DNA from: Schizochytrium sp. TIO01
Lineage: Eukaryota; Protista; Bigyra: Labyrinthulomycetes
DNA length: 64,000 bases
Assembly (NCBI GenBank): GCA_004764695.1
Contig: SMSO01000032.1
Span: forward strand, 2,480,001 to 2,544,000
Direction of reading: 5' to 3'
Shown: piece after piece, positions 8,463 to 46,586 of the stretch
How the letters are laid out: each line of letters opens with the position of its first letter
How positions within the stretch are numbered: the first letter of the stretch is position 1
Translations under genes and position numbers: made by a program
The notes under the pieces: generated by a model
Databases searched by the model: none
The model's input: the letters and a program-made list of their open reading frames with translations, nothing else
What the model was told of the DNA's origin: nothing

Positions 8463-9980
8463 CAAGAAAAGAACCTTCTTATTTCCTTTCTTTCCCCCTC
8501 TTTCACTATTTATCTCTGTTTGCGCCTTTTTTATTATTGTTATTGTTGTTTGCTTTTCGTGAAAGAAAAAAGCAGCGTTGATCGAATGAGCAATCGCTCG
8601 ATGCGCTGTTGATCTCCGTATAAAGGCGTGGGAAAAACCTGGGAAGCAGCTGATGAGGAGGCTGCAACAGTGCGGAGGCCCGTTGAGACAGTTGGCTCCT
8701 CAAGATGTATGGGTCTTAAAGCATAGTATAGTTCACTGGTGGAGGTGGCGATGTTCAATGCTGCTACTGCGAAACTCATTTTTGCTGTGACAGATAAACA
8801 CATCGTGAATGAATGAATATTAAAATCATTTAATGAAAAGAATAATTATAAGTTGTTTATTCTCCCTTCTTCTTCTTCCTCTTTTTAAATTTCACACGGC
8901 GCAGGAATGATCGCGTGCCAAACGCGGAGGGGGAAAAAGAAAGGCGCAGAAAAAGAAGAAAAGAAGGAAAAGAAGAAATGAAAGAATGGAAAAGAAAAAA
9001 AAAGAGGGGCTGTGACCTGGGTTTGAAAGAAATATACAGAAAACCAGTTTTCTTTTTGTGAGGGACACACTCAAGGCTACGGGAAATGAGAGGGGCGGGC
9101 AAAAAATTAAAGGCGAAGAGGGGATGTGAGGAGGCTGAGCGTTGGTGTGAGGGGGAGGTAAAAAGTCGCGCTGTGAGGGGGAAAAGGCCCCTCCACTGCG
9201 AAGTTTCCATGGTGCAGTTGAGAGGCGCAAAGAGGCTGTGAATGAAGGGAACTTAGTTATTTATTTATTTTTGCTGCTCGTGTTGACGCGGGAAAAGAAA
9301 GGGATGAACAAACGAATTTTCCACCGTCGTTCGCTTCCTTTGGAATGAATTGCTGGCTTTCCTTAGTCTGTCTGCTCTATCCGTGAAATGGAGCGATGAA
9401 ACAATCGATTTTCTTCTCGGGTGGCAGGCCGGTAAGAGGGTGGAGTGAAAACATAGCCAAAACCCTCTTTTTCCTGTTGAATATATAGTGATATAAATAT
9501 ACATGTGTTTATTTAAAAACTTTTCATTTGTAAATTTTTATTTTAAGCGTGTGTGGAGCGTAGAATGGTAAGTAGCATTAAAAGAAAGTTTCGACTCCTG
9601 AGGACGGTAAAACAAAGAGAAAGTTTGAGTGGGGATAGAAAGAAAAAACTAAAGTTTTAGACTGAAGAGAGGGAGGACTTCAGAGGGAGAGAAAATGAGA
9701 GGAGAGTCGAAAAGAAAGGTAGATGAAAAGAAAAGGTCAGCCTGTTTAAAAGGAAGCTGTAATAGAAAAACATACTCAAGATAAAGAATCTTTTAGTTTT
9801 AAAAAGTGAATTAAAAATTCTGAAGAATCGAGCAATCAAAAACTTGATCAAACAAAGAAAACAAACACTTAATCATCCTGATCCCAGCGCAAAGGAACGA
9901 ACCCAAGCGCAGCAAACCCGAAGTTCGCTGCAGCGTATCCTCGCAGACCACCAAACTTTAAAGACAGAAACACCGGAGAT

Positions 9981-10733
9981 ATGCCGCGCAAGAGCAACAT
10001 TGGAGACGAAGTTGGTAAGACCGGCCCTCGCGGAGGCAAGCGCAAGAAGGCTCAAATGGACATGGTGCCCGGTATGGCCATGCCCAACAACAGCTTCGTG
10101 CCCCTCTTCGCCCAGGGTGCCACTCCCTCTGATGTCGCCAAGGCTCTCGGCATTGGTCTCGACGATGTTCCTGTCCCCCACGACAGCAGCGCCCACGAGA
10201 TCGAGGCCCTCCGCATCTTCACCGCCCGTGTGAGCAAGCGTCTCCTCGACATCATCTCCCCGACCCTCGCTGATGTCATCATGGGCTACAACCCCCACAT
10301 GGTCCCCATGCAGCAGCAGGCACCTCCCCAGAAGAAGCCCAGCAAGAAGAAGCGCGCTTCCCAGCCTCTTTACCCTGATGCCCCGGACCACGTCGCCTAC
10401 GGTGCCAACACTCTCCAGCGCCCCATGGACCCGAACATGATGCACCACCAGCACCACCAGCATCAGCAGCACCACATGGACATGGGCCTCACCGAGGAGG
10501 AGAAGAAGGCTCGCGCCAAGTTCCCCCACGAGTACGGTGAGCTCTTGCGTGCTGAGATCAACAAGAACCCGCAGACCAAGCCCAAGGACCTTCAGACCTG
10601 GCTCAAGACCTACCTTCTTGAGAAGCACGGCGGCCGTCTTCCTGCTGACTTCCCCGATGACAAGAAGATCGCCACCAAGATCGCCAACCTCAAAACCTCC
10701 CTCCGCAAGCGCACTGAGCCTGGTGCCCGCTAA
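9981..10733 (+). CDS. 250-aa basic protein of unknown function; NLS-like clusters, His/Gln tract and a possible C-terminal three-helix (HTH-like) domain
   Basis: ATG..TAA ORF with very strong C/G-ending codon bias (AAG, GCC, CTC, ATC) that mirrors into an antisense ORF. Contains GGKRKK and KKPSKKKR basic clusters, HHQHHQHQQHH, and C-terminal KFPHEYGELLRAEINKNPQTKPKDLQTWLK...FPDDKKIATKIANLK. Preceded by a CA-rich 5'UTR-like leader. Confidence 0.9.
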   Translation: MPRKSNIGDEVGKTGPRGGKRKKAQMDMVPGMAMPNNSFVPLFAQGATPSDVAKALGIGLDDVPVPHDSSAHEIEALRIFTARVSKRLLDIISPTLADVIMGYNPHMVPMQQQAPPQKKPSKKKRASQPLYPDAPDHVAYGANTLQRPMDPNMMHHQHHQHQQHHMDMGLTEEEKKARAKFPHEYGELLRAEINKNPQTKPKDLQTWLKTYLLEKHGGRLPADFPDDKKIATKIANLKTSLRKRTEPGAR

Positions 10734-31509: not shown

Positions 31510-32667
31510 CTAGCGCTTGCTTACAGAGGAACCGTCCACGTCAGAAAAGTAAGACGAATCGGAGTCTACGTCATCATCAGTTGAGAAATCAGTAAAGTCT
31601 CGGGTCGCGCGCTCTGCGGGAGATCCCCCCCAAAGGATTCGATACAAGAGAGCGGAAATCTTGGTGAACCAAAAAAGATTCAAGCAGACAATGACAGCAA
31701 GCAGGCCAAGCACAACCATGTACAGCGTTTCTCCAATGACAGGACGACCATCATTTAACAAAGTTGGTACCAAGCCTGTGGCTACCCTGTATAAACGCGC
31801 ATAAGCCCAAGAACCAGCAAAACCTACGAAGAGAGTGTCAGCGATTCCCTTCCAGCGAAAGCTGCTTGCTAGTTTAGATGCCTCCACGAAAATATCTGTA
31901 ACATCGTGTAAAATGAGACCAACCATGCCAATGCGAACAAAGTTGCCCAGGTAGATGATGGCCAGCAGCATGAGAACAGTGGAATGATGCAACGTCATCT
32001 CCCACATGTCCCGAGCCTGGCGTCCATCAACAACTTGAGAAATAAGAAGAACCACATAGAGTGGGATCTCTAGTGCGACATAAAACCACTTGAGAGACTC
32101 CTCGTTGCGCTGAAGAGGCAGGTCTTCCCAGGTTCTCGCGAGGTCTCGGCTCCAAACCTGGCCCCGTGAAATATAAAAATTGGCCAAAAGAAACACCGAG
32201 TACATGAGTAGACGCCACAGGCAGTCCGAGGATACACGAACCTTGACAGCATCCCGATCTAGACGCTGACGAGCTCGAAACCACGCATTGAGATCTTCCA
32301 CTGGTTTGTCAATCGCCTTAGAAACCGACTTGATCTCATTCATGTCCGGCAAAAGTGGCTTGTGTTTTTCGTATATGGCCTCGAGTTTGGGCTCCTGGAA
32401 AGGCACCGGCTGCAACTTCATGCGAAGACCCGCACGGACAACAGGCCGTAATATCGCACGTTCTAGTACAAACTTCGAGACGGCCATAACTGCTGCAGCA
32501 GCAGGGACCACTGTGAGCAGGTCCCTAGCAAGAGGATAATCTCCGGACGCAGCAGCGACCTTGAAGTCAGCAAATGATCCACCTCCAAGTTTTAGAAGAG
32601 CAGCCTCGACTGCACTCGAAGACCACATAAACGGCGCAAAGCCGTCCAGATCAGCAGCGAGGTCCAT
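31510..32667 (-). CDS. LAG1: Ceramide synthase (TLC/Lag1 family) with homeobox-like domain
   Basis: Lag1p motif RDMWEMTLHHSTVLMLLAIIYLGNFVRIGMVGLILHDVTDIFVEASK (HH and HD..D residues), multiple TM helices, FW..KI near the end, and an acidic Ser-rich tail. Hox-like segment LEAIYEKHKPLLPDMNEIKSVSKAIDKPVEDLNAWFRARQ. Confidence 0.92.
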   Translation of the reverse strand: MDLAADLDGFAPFMWSSSAVEAALLKLGGGSFADFKVAAASGDYPLARDLLTVVPAAAAVMAVSKFVLERAILRPVVRAGLRMKLQPVPFQEPKLEAIYEKHKPLLPDMNEIKSVSKAIDKPVEDLNAWFRARQRLDRDAVKVRVSSDCLWRLLMYSVFLLANFYISRGQVWSRDLARTWEDLPLQRNEESLKWFYVALEIPLYVVLLISQVVDGRQARDMWEMTLHHSTVLMLLAIIYLGNFVRIGMVGLILHDVTDIFVEASKLASSFRWKGIADTLFVGFAGSWAYARLYRVATGLVPTLLNDGRPVIGETLYMVVLGLLAVIVCLNLFWFTKISALLYRILWGGSPAERATRDFTDFSTDDDVDSDSSYFSDVDGSSVSKR

Positions 32668-39612: not shown

Positions 39613-40995
39613 ATGCGGTGGGGTGCTGCACGAAGGCTGCTAGTAGCGCTGGCTGCAGCATTGGCGCTGGCGACTCCTGCGGCTGCGCAAGAGACGGTTG
39701 TGCGCAGGCCACGCGCAGGCGGCCTGGGCGGTGGCAATGGCGGAGCGAGGTTTGCACAAGGGCAGCTCGGTGGAGTACGCACGAACAACCACCCACTGAG
39801 GAACACAAGCCCGACATTCGGAGACATCGGGTTCCCAACGACCGTGCTCAAAGATGTGGACGCATCGGGAGAGGCACAGAAGCGAGACGCAGAGATTGTG
39901 CTCAGGGCGTTCGACAGCTTCTTTAACTCGCCCAGAGTCTGTTCCAACCCGGAGAACTCGCTCAGCTTTCGTAACAGAGGTGCAGGAGAAGGACTCGGGT
40001 CGCTGCTTAACGGGTATGTAATTACATTTGCACGTGCGCTGACAGGTGGACAAAGACTATGCTCGCACGAAGCAACGACAAATTATGTGAACTCCTCGTC
40101 ATGCCCTGCACAATCGTGGGAATGCCTGTTCGAGCCAATTAGTACAGAGTGCCCGTGTGCTGATAATTTACCAGGATCGATGAAACCGAGACATGCTGAC
40201 AGGTGCTTCGACATGTCTGACCGTGAGTCTTACTCAAGTAATGGCCTCCGGACTTACATCTATGAAGCGATTAAATCGTTCTTTGACGAGCCGCTGCCAA
40301 TGCGGGATGATCACTGGTACATGGCACTTCTCTACCATTATGTGCTACGACCGAATGAGAAATTGCGCAACTTTCGCGATGCGCTGCGGACTTCCTTATT
40401 TCCTGATATCAACTTTAAAGATGCAATCGCCTGCCACGTGCGCCGTGGAGACCACTGGATGGGCCAGCATCATGAAGATCAGTCCTTCGTCGAAACTATC
40501 AAGGCAGTGGCTAATGCAACCAGTTCTACGACAGTTCTTCTGGCCTCGGATGATTTTACGGCCTTGAAAACCTTTCCTGATAAACTCAAACCGCTTCGTG
40601 TAATTTCTATTCCTGGAAATTACTCAATCCTCCATGAGCTAGAGAATGTTTGTAATGGCAGGTCGCGGAAATGCCAAGCAGCCAAATTTCTCCGCTCCAA
40701 GGGCTCAAGTGATGAAGGTCTGCTTCTTATGTCGCAGATTCTTCTTATGGCTGAAACAAAAGTCACTATCGGTAGTATAGGATCGAACTTTGCACGTTTG
40801 ATTCATCAATTACAGTGGGCACGCTCTATTCTCCAGGGAGAAGGAATGCCGCACCCTATGTTAAGTTTTATGGAAATGTCAGGCGCACAATATTTTGCCT
40901 GCGGATGGCGTCGCTCCACCCATCTTATGCGTAGTAGCGCGGTTGCGCGTAAGGAATGGGTTGCACGATATAAGTTCTACAAATCAATCGAATAA
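39613..40995 (+). CDS. GT23-family (FUT8/NodZ-like) fucosyltransferase with signal peptide
   Basis: The first true ATG at 39613 gives signal peptide MRWGAARRLLVALAAALALATPAAA. Motifs: GLGSLLN, WECLFEPIS, YVLRPN, ACHVRRGD (GDP-fucose motif I), VLLASDD (motif II) and GSIGSNFARL (motif III). Confidence 0.85.
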   Translation: MRWGAARRLLVALAAALALATPAAAQETVVRRPRAGGLGGGNGGARFAQGQLGGVRTNNHPLRNTSPTFGDIGFPTTVLKDVDASGEAQKRDAEIVLRAFDSFFNSPRVCSNPENSLSFRNRGAGEGLGSLLNGYVITFARALTGGQRLCSHEATTNYVNSSSCPAQSWECLFEPISTECPCADNLPGSMKPRHADRCFDMSDRESYSSNGLRTYIYEAIKSFFDEPLPMRDDHWYMALLYHYVLRPNEKLRNFRDALRTSLFPDINFKDAIACHVRRGDHWMGQHHEDQSFVETIKAVANATSSTTVLLASDDFTALKTFPDKLKPLRVISIPGNYSILHELENVCNGRSRKCQAAKFLRSKGSSDEGLLLMSQILLMAETKVTIGSIGSNFARLIHQLQWARSILQGEGMPHPMLSFMEMSGAQYFACGWRRSTHLMRSSAVARKEWVARYKFYKSIE

Positions 40996-43900
40996 AAACT
41001 TCTCCGCCCTCCACCATGCACATGGACATGCGTGTATTCACCAGTAGCGTCATTGGCTTCTAAATTTGCTGTTGTTTCTGGCAAACTATTTTCAGCTTGA
41101 GCGGCGTCAACAATTTCACCTCCGTCGCCTGTTGCCTCGCTTCCCCATTGCGCGTACGAATACGGGAGATAGCCTTCAGCTGGAGGTTCCCACTGCGACT
41201 CACCCGTAACTACGTGCTGATAGTACATGTACCCACTCGTCTCGTCGTAAACTTCATACCAAACGAGTTCTTCACCATTTGCACTGTATCCACTAGCCTG
41301 TAGTTGTTTTGCCATATCTTCACGGCTAGGTAACCGAGACCCACCTGCTGAAGGCGGCAATGCCGACCTTGGTGGACTTGGTGGCTTTTTCACTGGCACC
41401 TCCTGACCTTGTTTAGTACCTTCATCATAGTCTCCTTGTTCATCTGACTCTCTTGTTGTCGTTCTTTCTGTTTCTATTGTTGGTAGTTCTGCTGGTTCTC
41501 TATTTCCATGTTCTTCATGGAAATCGCCTTCATCATAGACTCCTTCCACTTCTGTTTCTGCCGTATCACCTCTCCCCGCGTTGTAAGATCCCTCCTCTAT
41601 ATACCCGTCTTCCTCGCCTTCAGGCCTCACAGAATTGTCTTGTTCCTCAATTGGTAATCCTTGAAGATATCGGTCTCCCGCGTCTTGTTCCTCTTGGTAG
41701 TATGGTTCTTCTACTATTGTCTCTGTTTTGCCTTCTGCTTGTTGGTCATATGCTCCCGCGTCTTGTTCCTCTTGGTAGTATGGTTCTTCTACTATTGTCT
41801 CTGTGTTGTCTTCTACTTGTTGGTCATAAGGTTCTTCTGTATACTCCTCTGACTCACCTTCAGGCCTCACAGAATTGTTTGGTTCCTCACTTGTTAACTC
41901 TTGAAGATCTGCATCTTCCGCGTCTTGTTCGGGCCAAACAGATTTGTTTTGTTCCTCAATTGATAGCTCTTGAAGATCTCTGTCTCTCACGTCTTGTTCC
42001 TCTCGATTGTATGATTCTTCTACGAATGTCTCTGCCTCGCCTTCTGGCCATGTAGCTCTGTCAGGCTTATCAGAATCTATTGGTATATCCTCTTTGCCGT
42101 TGGCTTCTTCAGTGTCTCCAAGTGGCCCCTCTCTCATATTTTCATATGTGTCACCGGTCTCCTTTGTTTCTGCATTAGCTTCTGCACCAGGATAAATACT
42201 TTCGTGAATGACACTCACCTCCTGTACATTCAGATTTTCCAGAGCAGAATTCTCAGGGCTATTAGCCTGTATTTTCTCAGCCTCGCTCGGTTCAAATTCA
42301 GAGTTTATTGATTGTTTGGAAGCTACGCTAGAACTTGGAGGACCATGTGGATGCACTTCACTCATATCTTGATTGATATCACGAATGCCGACACCCTCTC
42401 CTAGACTGCTGCCCAAGTCCTGAACGATAGTCTGATCCCTACGTTCGTGCCCCTCTGTTTCATGTTTGTTTGTCAAGTCTTGACCCGCTTCTTCATTAGT
42501 CAAATCTTCATATGAGTTGACGATATTAGAAAGGCCATGTGGCACATTACTACTACTATTTTTGTCAAAATCTGCCTCAGTATCTTTGTCAGCCTCCTTG
42601 ATATTAACCTCGCCCTCATGATCGGTAGCTTCCTCAGGGAGTCTAACTGGATCAGCATTGCTTATCATATCTTCATTACATTCTGCTATAGAAGCTGAAA
42701 GTTGCGTTTCTGCCTGCTGGGTCTCAATATTGGAATTCCCCAAAGCTCTTTCGGCATCTCCCTCGATTTCAACATAGGGTCCACCAGAACCTTGCGCAGG
42801 TTTGCTACTTTCGATTTTATTATTAAATGTAACATTTGTCTCATTCATATGATTGCCCTCATCAAGAGCCAAGATACTTTGATTTTCGTCATATCCGCTA
42901 GAGTCTTCTGCATAGACAGGAGGAAAGGAATTCACATTCTCACCCGGAATAGAAATATCCTTCAAAGCGGCGTGGTGTAAAATGTCTCCCTCATTGCTCT
43001 TGTCAGTAACTTGTGCTTCAGTCCTGTCGCCCACAACCTCAGCTTCTTCGGTTTTTACCTTAACTTCGTTAGTTATAGAAGAAATGGCAGGATCTGCACT
43101 TATTTTAGGACCGCTTGTTGGCTTTGGAAGGGATGCAGAATCCTCCTCAGAAGTTGATTGTACATTGCTACTATCGTGTGGAAGGGCTATTGTCTCTATC
43201 ACGTTTTCTGTGGCATGGACTACTGTGGATAAAGTTGAGTGAAGTGTTCCTGTCTCTACATTATTCTTGACGGCATCCTTCGACTGGGTCAATCTATTAT
43301 TTTCATCTTCACTCAATGATTCAGTGGATTCAGATCCCTCCCTTTTGAAACTAGTAGATTTACGCGGGATTGAGTCCGTTCCAATATCGCGTGCAGATTG
43401 ATTTGGCATTGTGAATTCATTTTGTATCGGATGTTCATACATTTTAGTGCTCATTTGCAGCAAATTTGAAGCCGCATTTAAAGATGTGTCAGAAGTTCCT
43501 TCTGCTGGAGTTTGACTAGAAATGAAATCCGCATTTAAAGGTGCAGGGAGTATGTCCAGGGGCTTGTCAGAAATGTTGCCATTCAAATTTTCCTCAGAAG
43601 AAACCAGCGACAATTCGAGGGGTTCTGATTTAGAGTTTTCAAGCAATTGGTAAGAATCGTCGCTCTGACCTAAGACAAGATCCATTTCCACCAGCCTTTC
43701 TTTTTTAACTTGATCGTGCGTCATTAAATGACTCTTTTTGCCATCAAGTAGCGCGGCATCGCTGCTGTCGTATGATGGGGCTATGAGACTTTCCTGTTTG
43801 GCTTCATGAGCCTGTAGTACATCAAAACTTTGATCACTTCTACGGATATCACGGTCTTGGTTTAGAGGTGGGTCTAAATAAGGACTGCCCGCATGCTCGT

Positions 43901-44396
43901 TGTCCACTATGACTTGAGAAGTTTTACGATCAGTTGTTTCACTTGTGTTTCGCTGATCGTCTTTTGAGTCATCAGAATTTTTCTCCACGTCTGGAACCAA
44001 AGCATGAGTCTCCTTAACTGCGATTGCAGATTCTTCGTGTTCCTCAATTCTTGGTGGATGGGTTGGCGTTGTTGACTCTTGACGTGAAGAAAGAGGTCCT
44101 GTAGAAAGCGATCTTTGCGAAGGTGGTTTTCCTGCGGGCGAAGGTGGTGGTGCTGGCCTTGCTGGTGGTGGAGGTGGATTTCCTCGACCCATAGGAGAAC
44201 CTAATGGGGGCTGAACCTTTGGCCCTGCTTGCGTTGTGCTGATACTCAGAGATGGTGAACCAATCAGACCAGAAAAACAATCACTGGTAATTTCTTGGGC
44301 CTGTTGCTGCTGAGAATTTGAAGGGGTATTCGTAGGGGGAGGGGGGGGAGATCGATACGAGCTAGAGCTAGGAGATACCCTTTCAAATGATGCCAT
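40977..44396 (-). CDS. Large acidic low-complexity protein with Pro-rich tracts and C-terminal WW domain (probably the 3' part of a gene starting at about 45750)
   Basis: 1139-aa ORF with WW domain WYEVYDETSGYMYYQHVVTGESQWEPP (41261-41181) and internal duplicated EEPYYQEEQDAG blocks. The frame is open upstream of its ATG, overlapping the end of the 44407-45750 ORF. Confidence 0.8.
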   Translation of the reverse strand: MASFERVSPSSSSYRSPPPPPTNTPSNSQQQQAQEITSDCFSGLIGSPSLSISTTQAGPKVQPPLGSPMGRGNPPPPPARPAPPPSPAGKPPSQRSLSTGPLSSRQESTTPTHPPRIEEHEESAIAVKETHALVPDVEKNSDDSKDDQRNTSETTDRKTSQVIVDNEHAGSPYLDPPLNQDRDIRRSDQSFDVLQAHEAKQESLIAPSYDSSDAALLDGKKSHLMTHDQVKKERLVEMDLVLGQSDDSYQLLENSKSEPLELSLVSSEENLNGNISDKPLDILPAPLNADFISSQTPAEGTSDTSLNAASNLLQMSTKMYEHPIQNEFTMPNQSARDIGTDSIPRKSTSFKREGSESTESLSEDENNRLTQSKDAVKNNVETGTLHSTLSTVVHATENVIETIALPHDSSNVQSTSEEDSASLPKPTSGPKISADPAISSITNEVKVKTEEAEVVGDRTEAQVTDKSNEGDILHHAALKDISIPGENVNSFPPVYAEDSSGYDENQSILALDEGNHMNETNVTFNNKIESSKPAQGSGGPYVEIEGDAERALGNSNIETQQAETQLSASIAECNEDMISNADPVRLPEEATDHEGEVNIKEADKDTEADFDKNSSSNVPHGLSNIVNSYEDLTNEEAGQDLTNKHETEGHERRDQTIVQDLGSSLGEGVGIRDINQDMSEVHPHGPPSSSVASKQSINSEFEPSEAEKIQANSPENSALENLNVQEVSVIHESIYPGAEANAETKETGDTYENMREGPLGDTEEANGKEDIPIDSDKPDRATWPEGEAETFVEESYNREEQDVRDRDLQELSIEEQNKSVWPEQDAEDADLQELTSEEPNNSVRPEGESEEYTEEPYDQQVEDNTETIVEEPYYQEEQDAGAYDQQAEGKTETIVEEPYYQEEQDAGDRYLQGLPIEEQDNSVRPEGEEDGYIEEGSYNAGRGDTAETEVEGVYDEGDFHEEHGNREPAELPTIETERTTTRESDEQGDYDEGTKQGQEVPVKKPPSPPRSALPPSAGGSRLPSREDMAKQLQASGYSANGEELVWYEVYDETSGYMYYQHVVTGESQWEPPAEGYLPYSYAQWGSEATGDGGEIVDAAQAENSLPETTANLEANDATGEYTHVHVHGGGRRSFYSIDL
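41620..42050. repeat. Coding segmental repeats in the acidic WW protein
   Basis: Identical TCTTGTTCCTCTTGGTAGTATGGTTCTTCTACTATTGTCTCTGT at about 41683 and 41761 (78-nt spacing), plus recurring DLQEL..EE..NSV.PE motifs. Confidence 0.8.
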
Positions 44397-44406
44397 TTGA
44401 GTATCC

Positions 44407-45750
44407 TTATTTTGCGGAGTTGGCGCCCCCTGCGGTGGAAGGTGGATAAAGAGGTTGAGCTGGAGGCGTTGGTATTGGCTTTTGGCTTTGCTCGGTAACG
44501 CTTGTGTCGATAGCCCCTGGACGAAATCTGAATGGCCCCTGAGAAGATGTCTTAGCCTTGGGAGATGGTTTCGCCTTCGATTTGGGGCTCTCGGCCGCTA
44601 ATACGTTCCTCCTTGACTTACTTGACCCATGACTTGATGAAATATTATTAGCTTTGCTGTGTGTAGCTTTCGATGGTTTTTCGTATGAGTGTTTCGGACT
44701 GAAAGTGTCGATTTCTGTGATAGGTTTAGGAGACACCATTTGCATAGATGGTGGTTTGGGTAGCGGTTTATATTTGGGTTTAAAAGACATTGGTTCAAGA
44801 GGTTCCTGTAATAAATCAAGTTCTCGGTGGCTTTCTGCAGAAATGGCGCGGCTGGACCATGAATGTTCTTCGAAATTTGCTTTTCGAGGCGGCTGAAGCT
44901 GTGGTTGTGGATGAATAACTCGTTTAAGGCGCGACGGAGATGATTTGACTGGGCTCAAACTTCTGACCTCCTTCATTCTTTGTTGCCTCTCAGCTTCGCG
45001 ATCTTGAATTCTCTTTTGTGCCTCACGGAAGGCTCTGCGAGCCCTTGCGCGTTCCCTCTTTCTTTCATGTAATTTCTTTTGCTCGCGCTGCTCCAGAAGT
45101 TCATCCATTTCGGCATCTTTTTGAGCTATCATCAAACGTATTGCGCGACGACGGCGAGCTTCAGCACGTGTCTTTTCTCGCTCTATGTCCAGTTCTTGTA
45201 ATCTCCGCTTTTCTGGTCTCCTCGCCATTGATAAGGACTTATTATAGCCTGGCATCTCTTCATCCTGGTCTTTCTCTTTGACAGCACGATTTGCCCATTG
45301 AATTACCTCATATGGAGAAACGTACGGTTTCGCAAGTGCTACCGCCCGTTCTTCAAGTTGACAAACACCTGGCTCTGGTATATTGCTCGAGTACCATGCA
45401 TCATCGGCGGTGTTGATTGATATAATACGGAGATTCTTTTGCTTGCGCTCCTGAAATGTAATAAAGAATTTCTCAAGGAAAGCGTCGTCAGTCACGCCAG
45501 GGTGACGTTTCACAGCTTCCATCCACACACTGCGCGCAAAGCCACTTTCATCCTTTAAGAAGTTACGAAGGTACTCTTGTCGTCGCTGAGTTCCTTGTGT
45601 TCGAAGCAACTCGCGCAACAAGTGAAGATCCTCTTCAAAGTTCCGCGGATATACGTGCGATGGTGGCGGATCATACGATTCCCCCTTCTTCAAGTGCGAG
45701 TTACCCGAACCCTGTTTTTGCGAGGCCCGAGTTGTCAAGTGATGTGTCAT
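44407..45750 (-). CDS. Charged coiled-coil / Pro-Ser-rich protein; likely 5' part of the WW-domain gene, broken by a +1 frame break
   Basis: Long ORF with first ATG (MTHHL) at 45750 and an E/R/K-rich coiled coil. The stop lies only 10 nt before the next same-strand ATG, whose frame is already open. Confidence 0.7.
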   Translation of the reverse strand: MTHHLTTRASQKQGSGNSHLKKGESYDPPPSHVYPRNFEEDLHLLRELLRTQGTQRRQEYLRNFLKDESGFARSVWMEAVKRHPGVTDDAFLEKFFITFQERKQKNLRIISINTADDAWYSSNIPEPGVCQLEERAVALAKPYVSPYEVIQWANRAVKEKDQDEEMPGYNKSLSMARRPEKRRLQELDIEREKTRAEARRRRAIRLMIAQKDAEMDELLEQREQKKLHERKRERARARRAFREAQKRIQDREAERQQRMKEVRSLSPVKSSPSRLKRVIHPQPQLQPPRKANFEEHSWSSRAISAESHRELDLLQEPLEPMSFKPKYKPLPKPPSMQMVSPKPITEIDTFSPKHSYEKPSKATHSKANNISSSHGSSKSRRNVLAAESPKSKAKPSPKAKTSSQGPFRFRPGAIDTSVTEQSQKPIPTPPAQPLYPPSTAGGANSAK

Positions 45751-46586
45751 AGTTCCCAGTGATGCAATGACAGCAATGGCTGCCAGCAAGAACTTTGCCT
45801 TGCAATTGGACTCACTCCCTGGTGCTTTTTAATCGAGCATCACAAGCGCCAGAGCAGACCTGGTCGCCCTTTCATCAGAAGATACTCAACAGGAGAAAGA
45901 ATGTGACACAAATGAATTCTCAGCGGCGCGGACTCATACGGCCGTTCTCGCAAGTGCTGCTCTCAAGACCGCAGAACTCAGAAGGTGTGCACTCACCTTC
46001 ATTTGGTCTCACGTGACCAAGCGACGGTTAAATTAGTATCCTAATTTTGGCAAACGAAAGTAACTTACATATGCTTTACTGTTGAACAGTACGTCACGAA
46101 GTTTGAACCTTGATAGGAGCACAATCGACACTCTTCTTGGTAAGCTATGTATCTTTAAAGAGCCAGACCCCGTAACCTCAAGTGTGAAGCTCTAACTTTC
46201 TTCATAAGTATCGTCTGCGCGTACCAAAAGAAATGTTTTTCTACTCCCAGAAATAACCAACCACAAAATCGCACGTTGCAATACCCATCTTCAGTTCGGA
46301 ATTAGTAGACACGATCCTTCTACCCCCACGTGGTAGCGGAGACCAACAGAGTCCAGGTCACCTCAGAGGGAGCTCGAAGCAGTTCTTGTGCAAGATTGCT
46401 TGAACGAAGCTTTGGCTCTATTGGATAAAATAAAAATCAGGTATTAAAAAAGAAAATAAAAATTAGTATTAAAAAAGCACCACTGCGATTGTCTCTTTTT
46501 AATTGAACTAAAATGACCTCGGGGAAGGGATGAAAGAAGCTCATTTTCAATCATTGGAAATCTTCACACAAACCTTGAACGACGGC

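Follow-up and report, generated by a model that had tools for sequence, protein, structure and literature searches.

Ceramide synthases (CerS) that carry a homeodomain-like (Hox-like) domain are treated in homeobox reviews as an animal class, CERS, found mainly in bilaterians; the gain of this homeodomain via exon shuffling or translocation has been suggested, and its history was said to need more analysis (PMC2211742, PMC4901127, PMC6125248). A preliminary description of the window, which is the whole 64,000-nucleotide stretch of DNA analysed here, placed a gene for such an enzyme in an apparently stramenopile genome. The locus thus raises the question of whether the insert is a genuine relative of the animal domain, what it may do in the protein, and where the fusion of homeodomain and catalytic domain originated.

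The gene and the predicted enzyme

The features of the locus are the following:

31510..32667, reverse strand: Hox-type ceramide synthase (sphingoid base N-acyltransferase), predicted from the ORF listing and from the match to CerS6 in sequence and fold
32428..32667, reverse strand: N-terminal segment, probably lumenal, and first transmembrane helix (TM1), aa 1-80, with the helix at about 53-80 (AF2, pLDDT about 90)
32254..32391, reverse strand: Hox-like three-helix domain, predicted to be cytosolic, aa 93-138 (translation, AF2, HMM, Foldseek)
32236..32256, reverse strand: R138/R144, basic residues located where helix 3 ends and in the linker (alignment to human CerS6)
31657..32226, reverse strand: TLC (TRAM-LAG1-CLN8) catalytic membrane domain, aa 148-337 (Pfam PF03798)
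31894..31989, reverse strand: core of the Lag1p motif, H227-H228 ... H254-D255 ... D258 (translation)
31513..31602, reverse strand: acidic, Ser-rich disordered C-terminal tail, aa 356-385, containing TDFSTDDDVDSDSSY (pLDDT below 50 over aa 355-385)

The first interval is occupied in the ORF listing by one uninterrupted frame, ATG to stop, coding for 385 aa plus the stop, in agreement with the preliminary description. That the gene is intronless, as also proposed there, is borne out by the product of a MMETSP0958 transcript, which has 385 aa as well and is colinear with the window protein, with 2 substitutions; the absence of introns is uninformative here, because the neighbour genes are likewise long unbroken ORFs. 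This transcript, which we take to be from Aurantiochytrium limacinum, together with the Hondaea fermentalgiana protein "Ceramide synthase 4" (P0002), 75% identical to the window protein, confirms that the DNA belongs to a non-animal stramenopile, a thraustochytrid, the source being most likely A. limacinum. The taxon identifier in the transcript header, 87120, stands for the fungus Rhizopogon burlinghamii; this assignment was rejected as a probable digit swap of 87102 (A. limacinum), given that Hondaea, a thraustochytrid, is the closest relative with a name. The neighbours are ordinary eukaryotic genes (TTL, PX, WW, arrestin, M1 peptidase), and the GC3 of the gene (0.51) falls inside their range of 0.34-0.56. 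A contaminant or human contig was considered and rejected: nothing in the window looks human, and a spliced gene model is unneeded.

Its sequence identifies the gene product as a ceramide synthase that carries a Hox-like insert of the CerS2-6 type and has a predicted acyltransferase activity, and the enzyme identity first read from the letters stands. The Pfam search for the TRAM_LAG1_CLN8 domain located it at aa 148-337 (E=4e-29; 102.4 bits vs a cutoff of 24.6; profile positions 4-196 of 198). In the PDB, phmmer ranked human CerS6 first (E=6e-29), in one unbroken alignment over aa 32-374 that passes through the Hox-like region; the match to yeast Lac1 (E=6e-10) covers aa 206-372. A full-length AF2 model, built on an MSA of thraustochytrid sequences only (pTM 0.68), retrieved the CerS6 structures 8qz7 and 8qz6 at the top of a Foldseek search (E~3e-11, 305-311 columns), followed by yeast Lac1/Lag1 with about 220 aligned columns, and the predicted structure has the seven-TM fold of CerS. 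H227, H228, H254 and D255 are invariant in a 17-sequence alignment (A2), and the His and Asp residues of the Lag1p motif align with the catalytic ones of CerS6 and Lac1 in the phmmer alignment.

Outside the catalytic domain, conservation is uneven. The N-terminal segment with TM1 is the least conserved part within the clade of the window protein (mean pairwise identity 0.25). Its N-terminus has one Trp (W15), and the 385-aa protein has no N-x-S/T sequon anywhere, so that the N-terminal Trp cluster with an adjacent N-glycosylation sequon described for animal Hox-CerS (PMC11742613) is missing; this feature is not necessarily defining. The C-terminal tail is strongly conserved across the clade. 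Here TDFSTDDDVDSDSSY represents a variant of the DxRSDxE motif defined for CerS (PMC8789539), aligned as D-F-S-T-D-D-D (R to S, S to T, E to D), while other protists in the set retain D-x-R-S.

The Hox-like segment and its possible role

The interval 32254-32391 translates on the reverse strand to PKLEAIYEKHKPLLPDMNEIKSVSKAIDKPVEDLNAWFRARQRLDR, and the DCLWRLLMY stretch is found downstream at aa 148-156. With the TLC domain at aa 148-337 according to Pfam and the TM helix at aa 53-80 according to AF2, the segment is flanked by TM1 on one side and the TLC domain on the other, where it had been located originally. Its likeness to CerS2-6 is above chance. A segment-only HMM built from the animal-containing clade gives 28.9 bits to aa 90-138 of the window protein, the highest of 2,250 composition-matched shuffles reaching 5.8 bits; moreover, a 67-aa segment searched alone with phmmer has as its two best PDB matches the NMR structures of the mouse LASS5/LASS6 homeodomains (E=0.015 for 2cqx, and 0.16). 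The general Pfam Homeodomain model (PF00046) is blind to it, with no match at E<=10 for either the whole protein or the isolated segment, while the vertebrate-like CerS5/6 used as positive controls (P0021, P0025, P0049) score 25-32 bits.

The segment is predicted to form a three-helix bundle, as expected for a homeodomain. Helix 1 is modelled by AF2 at aa 93-102, helix 2 at 109-119 and helix 3 from 123 (123-167), merging into TM2, and the three helices appear in two independent runs, on the full-length protein and on the isolated segment (pLDDT 78). Foldseek with the isolated 61-aa segment returned homeodomains at all of the top 50 PDB positions, including CerS6, LASS5 and LASS6, with TM scores of 0.56-0.77 and weak E-values (0.4 or higher); the isolated model could lean to a homeodomain because its MSA held animal CerS sequences. 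Residues of the hydrophobic core (L, Y, V/L, L, W48, F49) are retained, and the segment is as constrained as the catalytic domain, with conservation of 0.42 vs 0.39 for the TLC domain in the clade and 0.61 vs 0.54 among the thraustochytrid types. By sequence comparison, the insert shares ancestry and position with the animal CerS Hox-like domain, it folds like a homeodomain in the models, and it is genuine yet degenerate.

The residues used by homeodomains to contact DNA are missing. Position HD51 is Ala in the window protein (A/V/I across the clade) in place of Asn, and HD53 is Gln (Q/E across the clade) in place of Arg; the sequence before helix 1, LQPVPFQEPK, lacks the basic N-terminal arm with Arg5, and no NLS-like basic cluster occurs anywhere in the protein. 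By contrast with these positions, the two basic residues that flank the end of the Hox-like domain in human CerS6, K125 and R131, have aligned counterparts in R138 and R144, the former invariant in 14 of 14 rows of the clade and the latter among the six thraustochytrid-type sequences. The CerS6 residues are located where the acyl-CoA cavity opens to the cytoplasm, and CerS5/6 function depends to an important degree on them (PMC11919693), most of the mammalian Hox-like domain being dispensable for catalysis (PMC4901127, PMC11919693).

Two other readings of the segment have to be weighed against this evidence. That it is an amphipathic helical linker resembling the WFR.R motif by chance or convergence is barely credible: the failure of the general Pfam model would fit such a linker, and convergence has been raised for the CerS homeodomain generally by Holland et al. 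(PMC2211742), but the gap between 28.9 bits and the shuffles (5.8 or below), the shared position between TM1 and TLC within a continuous CerS6 alignment, the fold search returning homeodomains only, and the graded series of intermediates towards PF00046 (Lapot gusevi, 22.2; P0041, 19.8; Cercozoa sp. M6MM, 19.7; the clade members P0012/P0011, 13-14 bits) speak against it, and for the comparison of CerS with CerS a chance likeness is effectively refuted. The second reading, put forward in the preliminary description, is a membrane-tethered, lipid-responsive transcriptional regulator analogous to Drosophila Schlank, a Hox-CerS with a reportedly nuclear, transcription-related role. The predicted homeodomain fold and the constraint on the segment are in its favour; that it is constrained no less than the catalytic domain suggests that it does more than serve as a passive linker, and the dispensability of most of the domain for mammalian catalysis leaves room for a second function. 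The missing canonical contacts are no strict bar to DNA binding either, because Schlank, also without Asn51, has been reported to be active in the nucleus. On the other side stand the complete lack of Pfam Homeodomain signal, the replacement of the universal Asn at HD51 by Ala, with hydrophobic residues throughout the clade, and of Arg at HD53 by Gln or Glu, and the absence of basic arm and NLS-like cluster; the best-conserved basic residues are those which catalysis needs in CerS5/6, and helix 3, modelled as continuous with TM2, would thereby be pinned to the membrane surface. A regulatory role of this kind is thus without support in the window protein, and we consider it very unlikely.

The reading preferred here is that of an ER-membrane Hox-CerS with a non-DNA-binding insert, inherited vertically from a fusion older than animals, which is held with good, though not full, confidence. 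The insert probably does not act as a DNA-binding domain, and its role may be read, by analogy, from the work on human CerS5/6. The N-terminus and TM1 would be followed by the cytosolic homeodomain-like module, a six-TM TLC barrel with the Lag1p site, and the acidic tail. Helix 3 is predicted to run directly into TM2, and this stretch would, as in human CerS6, bring conserved basic residues (R131, R133, R138, R144) to the opening of the acyl-CoA cavity on the cytosolic side, while the remainder of the bundle may form a conserved cytosolic cap with a possibly stabilising or protein-interaction role. A homeodomain fold conserved for so long in the absence of DNA-contact residues suggests a structural or regulatory role at this cytosolic opening of the enzyme. 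Thraustochytrids are tractable oleaginous organisms, in which deletions of the Hox-CerS domain would be straightforward.

Distribution and origin of the fusion

The insert is present in all 13 representatives of the deep, labyrinthulomycete-type clade to which the window protein belongs, and homeodomain-like segments could be aligned in almost every one of the top 150 representatives. The named non-animal carriers are Cercozoa sp. M6MM and Lapot gusevi, both Rhizaria, and one MMETSP protist; most of the protist-like homologues are unnamed environmental eukaryote sequences (Logan, ENA, JGI), and 9 of the 30 representatives queried were usefully named. Word-index protein searches with the window protein, with the 17-sequence profile A2 and with region 60-345 of P0041 gave 4-7 matches each and hardly any new names. 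Full-text literature searching brought up neither work on the ceramide synthases of thraustochytrids nor a description of Hox-like CerS in non-animals. In the sequence databases Hox-CerS appear to be already widespread in protists, a finding that the preliminary description had named as counting against its interpretation; the gene is therefore an unexceptional representative of a large protist assemblage. The window gene itself is most likely a vertically inherited, ordinary housekeeping enzyme.

In the CerS tree, which is unrooted because it lacks a non-Hox CerS outgroup, the clade of the window protein has 100% SH-aLRT support and lies outside the animal-containing clade, an 83-row group with few named members. 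Its stem is long (0.6) and its 13 representatives are each under 50% identical. Grouping this clade with animals was not rejected by the AU test (p-AU 0.574); the tree tested separates the clade plus the named animals from seven protist sequences, and scores 5.5 lnL units better than the quick free tree.

The preliminary description had left the choice between a much older origin of the fusion and a horizontal transfer; an older origin fits better than a recent transfer, while the AU test leaves an ancient one unrejected. According to the latter scenario, a labyrinthulomycete ancestor gained its Hox-CerS from an animal or another holozoan, and the fusion remains a holozoan invention. The unrejected AU topology is consistent with this, as are the greater closeness of the protein, among solved structures, to human CerS6 than to yeast Lag1/Lac1, and the weak placement of Lapot gusevi inside the animal-containing polytomy in one tree. 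However, in no tree do named animals enclose the clade, and the stem of 0.6, the full support and the divergence of the 13 representatives imply that any transfer was ancient. The gene composition matches that of the neighbours, the loop between helices 1 and 2 exceeds that of vertebrate CerS by two residues, and the form of the tail motif is peculiar to the clade. Since two rhizarian taxa and several deep unnamed clades share the architecture, several independent transfers would be required, and this scenario is regarded as unlikely, although less so than the two readings of the segment discussed above.

That the insert is shared by Rhizaria and, through the labyrinthulomycete-type clade, by Stramenopiles indicates that the HD-TLC fusion is most likely not an animal invention and predates animals. 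As the AU test does not decide the topology, vertical descent is favoured by the distribution and not proven by the tree; furthermore, an insert that is degenerate, occurs in multiple lineages and bears no sign of DNA binding speaks for a fusion of greater age rather than for a new transcription factor. With clear enzymes of the Hox type in Rhizaria as well as in a stramenopile, the fusion would be placed outside animals. More tentative, with the chances a little below even, is the proposal that SAR protists and opisthokonts both inherited it from their common ancestor, which would date it close to the last eukaryotic common ancestor. If so, the "CERS homeobox class" would not be an animal one, the Hox-less enzymes (yeast Lag1/Lac1, plant LOH, CerS1 and nematode HYL) would represent a separate ancient paralogue or secondary losses, and the strong conservation in thraustochytrids would point to a conserved non-DNA function of the homeodomain fold at the ER surface.

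Comparison with known ceramide synthases

Mammalian CerS2-CerS6 (8qz6/8qz7; 2cqx/1x2m) are built in the same way, from TM1 through the cytosolic Hox-like three-helix domain and the TLC barrel to the acidic tail. In common with the window protein, at about 25-29% identity, they have W-F-R-x-R in helix 3, the basic pair K125/R131 or its counterparts, and the catalytic HH and HD..D residues. In contrast to the vertebrate-like CerS5/6, which score 25-32 bits, the window segment falls under all Pfam Homeodomain thresholds. Instead of an N-terminal Trp cluster with an N-glycosylation sequon (PMC11742613), the window protein has a single N-terminal Trp without sequon. At HD53 the mammalian enzymes have Arg and the window protein Gln; "RQRLDRD" replaces the mammalian run "RRNQDRP", the loop between helices 1 and 2 has the two additional residues noted above with respect to vertebrate CerS, and the tail motif reads DxSTDDD instead of DxRSDxE.

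Drosophila Schlank shows the same domain architecture as the window protein, and the canonical Asn51 is missing in both; for the CERS class, Burglin and Affolter list R at position 50 (PMC4901127). An arginine-rich, NLS-like run in helix 3, presumably present in Schlank, is absent from the window protein, as is any other basic cluster. Yeast Lag1/Lac1, plant LOH/ASC1 and mammalian CerS1 have the TLC domain and the Lag1p motif like the window protein, but lack the insert; indeed, the alignments with the yeast enzymes reach the TLC part only (about 220 columns vs 305-311 for CerS6).

Among protists, P0002 of Hondaea fermentalgiana has the same architecture, its gene model being N-terminally truncated and beginning inside the Hox-like domain. 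In the proteins of Cercozoa sp. M6MM (MES1907569.1, P0037) and Lapot gusevi (EP00455, P0027) the segment is present in the alignment and scores close to the PF00046 threshold (19.7 and 22.2 bits, respectively); these rhizarian proteins keep Arg at HD53 and have only about 24% overall identity to the window protein.

The ceramide synthase gene and its host

The ceramide synthase (CerS) gene is defined by two features:

31510-32667, minus strand: uninterrupted open reading frame (ORF listing), ATG to stop, 385 aa
aa 148-337 of its product, minus strand: TLC/TRAM_LAG1_CLN8, the sole Pfam domain detected (E=4e-29)

Among solved structures, human ceramide synthase 6 (CerS6) is the top sequence match, unbroken over aa 32-374 (E=6e-29); the matches to yeast Lac1 and Lag1 are confined to the TLC part (E=6e-10 and weaker). 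The full-length AlphaFold2 model (mean pLDDT 72, pTM 0.68), which drew on an alignment restricted to thraustochytrids (A1), contains a transmembrane helix (53-80), short helices spanning 93-102 and 109-119 and, from 123, a further helix that is long and enters the membrane. Its nearest structures by Foldseek are those of human CerS6 (8qz7/8qz6, E~3e-11, 305-311 aligned columns), followed by the yeast enzymes, with about 220 columns. The catalytic Lag1p residues H227, H228, H254, D255 and D258 are all found in the window protein, the first four being invariant in a 17-sequence alignment (A2). Because of this architecture and these residues, the protein is predicted to be an ER-membrane enzyme, an acyl-CoA-dependent sphingoid base N-acyltransferase; of the features that define a ceramide synthase it has the TLC domain, the Lag1p motif and the predicted fold.

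The contig is not holozoan, a point on which the preliminary description had asked for confirmation. The product of an MMETSP0958 transcript, from what we take to be Aurantiochytrium limacinum, has the same length as the window protein and differs at two residues; a Logan assembly member differs at one, and 'Ceramide synthase 4' of the thraustochytrid Hondaea fermentalgiana is 75% identical. The neighbouring ORFs are long, uninterrupted and ordinary eukaryotic (tubulin-tyrosine ligase, PX, WW, arrestin, M1 aminopeptidase), and the GC3 of the gene (0.51) lies inside their range (0.34-0.56). A contaminant or human contig was rejected, the window having no human-looking content. The ORF is indeed intronless, but the neighbouring ORFs are equally uninterrupted: this state is typical here and speaks neither for nor against a transfer.

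The MMETSP0958 header carries TAXON_ID=87120, which in the NCBI taxonomy is the basidiomycete Rhizopogon burlinghamii, while 87102 is the number of A. limacinum; two digits were probably swapped in the metadata, an error that could mislead automated taxonomy. The public Hondaea gene model (272 aa, compared with window protein aa 109-385) begins at the equivalent of M109, inside the Hox-like domain, and therefore lacks TM1 and helix 1; the start was probably mis-called, rather than the protein being really truncated. Elsewhere in the window, two ORFs of about 250 aa each, 9873..10628 (minus strand) and 9981..10733 (plus strand), overlap almost fully at 9873-10733, beside a 10-12 kb bin that is locally GC-rich and of skewed composition (GC 0.50, GC skew -0.19). 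Over 40001-46000 the AT skew stays negative, at about -0.17 to -0.20, across two long minus-strand ORFs:

40977..44396, minus strand: ORF of 1139 aa with a WW domain
44407..45789, minus strand: ORF of 460 aa without a Pfam match

These two ORFs are only 10 bases apart and may be one gene.

The homeodomain-like segment

Translation locates the peptide likened to the Hox-like domain of CerS2-6 where it had been placed, and the resemblance is real. When the 67-aa segment alone was compared with the PDB, the two best matches were the homeodomain NMR structures of mouse LASS5 (2cqx, E=0.015) and LASS6 (1x2m, E=0.16). A segment-only HMM was made from the corresponding region in the 77 usable sequences of the clade that contains the animals, and was run on the remaining sequences, each accompanied by 50 shuffled versions. 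It gave the window protein 28.9 bits at aa 90-138, against a maximum of 5.8 among 2,250 shuffled decoys. Modelled in isolation (aa 86-146, alignment A3), the segment forms three helices (pLDDT 78), and homeodomains fill all of the top 50 places in a fold search of the PDB, among them CRX, OTX2, ALX4, POU homeodomains, the CerS6 Hox-like domain, LASS5 and LASS6 (TM-scores 0.56-0.77, rmsd 1-2.5 Å). Owing to the shortness of the domain these matches have weak E-values (0.4 or higher), and this fold is consistent rather than independent evidence, since the alignment included animal CerS sequences; the full-length model predicts the same helices from thraustochytrid sequences alone. The Pfam Homeodomain profile (PF00046), proposed as a check, is silent on the window protein even at E<=10. 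Vertebrate-like CerS5/6 controls from the same match list score 25-32 bits, Lapot gusevi (22.2), P0041 (19.8), Cercozoa sp. M6MM (19.7) and P0017 (15.3) are intermediate, and two members of the window protein's own clade reach 13-14 bits. Taken together, PDB search, segment-only HMM, fold and Pfam scores identify the segment as a genuine, strongly diverged CerS-type homeodomain-like module.

What the segment may do

Within the clade the segment is no less conserved than the TLC domain (pairwise identity averages 0.42 vs 0.39; 0.61 vs 0.54 in six thraustochytrid-type sequences), and its conserved residues lie mainly in helices 2 and 3 and in the linker after them. Invariant in A1 are N110, K113, S116, V123, E124, N127, W129, F130, R131, R133, Q134, D137, R138, V141, K142 and R144. 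R138 and R144 align with K125 and R131 of CerS6, which are situated where the acyl-CoA cavity opens to the cytoplasm and have an important part in the function of CerS5/6 (PMC11919693); the remainder of the Hox-like domain is reported as flexible and non-essential (PMC11919693; PMC4901127). The insert would thus be a cytosolic cap, whose last helix helps to form or position the CoA-binding mouth, while its three-helix bundle may contribute stability or a protein-interaction surface.

The preliminary description had hinted that the insert makes the protein a lipid-sensing transcription regulator, a role suggested by its homeodomain likeness; this now appears very improbable, since the residues for DNA reading are gone. 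HD51, universally Asn in homeodomains, is Ala in the window protein and hydrophobic across the clade; HD53, where homeodomains have Arg, is Gln or Glu in the clade. Neither a basic N-terminal arm nor an NLS-like basic cluster was found in the protein, and in the AlphaFold2 model helix 3 runs unbroken into TM2, which pins it to the membrane surface. The protein thus lacks what was tested for in a DNA-binding homeodomain.

Distribution, origin and relation to animal Hox-CerS

Searched with a profile, a set of 1.84 billion representative proteins yielded 3,514 matches at E<=1e-3, the best 150 of which were aligned to the profile. Nearly all of these 150 carry an aligned segment LE..Y...P....L.K......V..W[FL]R.RR..DRP between TM1 and TLC. 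The few nameable matches include animals (Solemya, Patella, Macrostomum) and non-animals, namely Cercozoa sp. M6MM (MAG, NCBI), Lapot gusevi (EukProt, Rhizaria) and MMETSP marine-protist transcripts, so that the insert is confined neither to animals nor to this gene. P0020, a 764-aa homologue, has two Homeodomain and two TLC units (PF00046 52 bits, TLC 291 bits), its gene model probably joining tandem CerS genes; two others, P0054 (657 aa) and P0145 (549 aa), bear N-terminal extensions of about 300 aa without a Pfam match.

In trees without a Hox-less outgroup, and hence unrooted, the window protein falls in a clade of 13-14 representatives (100% support), each less than 50% identical to the others and all with the segment; this clade is not nested inside the 83-row clade to which all named animals belong. 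The position of Lapot gusevi shifts between analyses. As judged from these sequences, the HD-TLC fusion occurs outside animals in at least two lineages of SAR, and therefore it is most probably older than animals. Of the two origins proposed, much older fusion or transfer, the former is thus favoured; an ancient horizontal transfer is less probable, but a tree grouping the clade of the window protein with the named animals against seven protist sequences is not rejected by the AU test (p=0.574).

The homeobox literature consulted treats CERS as an animal class, whose history is said to need more analysis (PMC2211742; PMC4901127; PMC6125248), and no paper reporting a Hox-like CerS in protists was found in the literature searched. 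The protist sequences are openly in public databases, and 'Ceramide synthase 4' is already the NCBI name of the Hondaea protein; the evolutionary implication is modestly interesting. An entry in Supplementary Table S1 of PMC8789539, which probably reflects eukaryotic contamination of a MAG, is possibly another protist CerS.

An acidic, Ser-rich tail, TD.STDDD.DSDSSY.SD, is highly conserved in the clade (31513-31602, minus strand; aa 356-385; alignments A1 and A3) and may serve as a signal for phosphorylation or sorting. In most of these proteins the C-terminus is K-[RK]-H-E-D; in the window protein it is SSVSKR and in Hondaea DKQ.

The window protein shares with animal Hox-CerS the tested features of that subclass: insert position, homology, fold and flanking basic residues. 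Unlike the animal enzymes, it has a single N-terminal Trp, no N-glycosylation sequon, a helix 1-2 loop longer by two residues, Gln at HD53, and DxSTDDD in place of the tail motif DxRSDxE.
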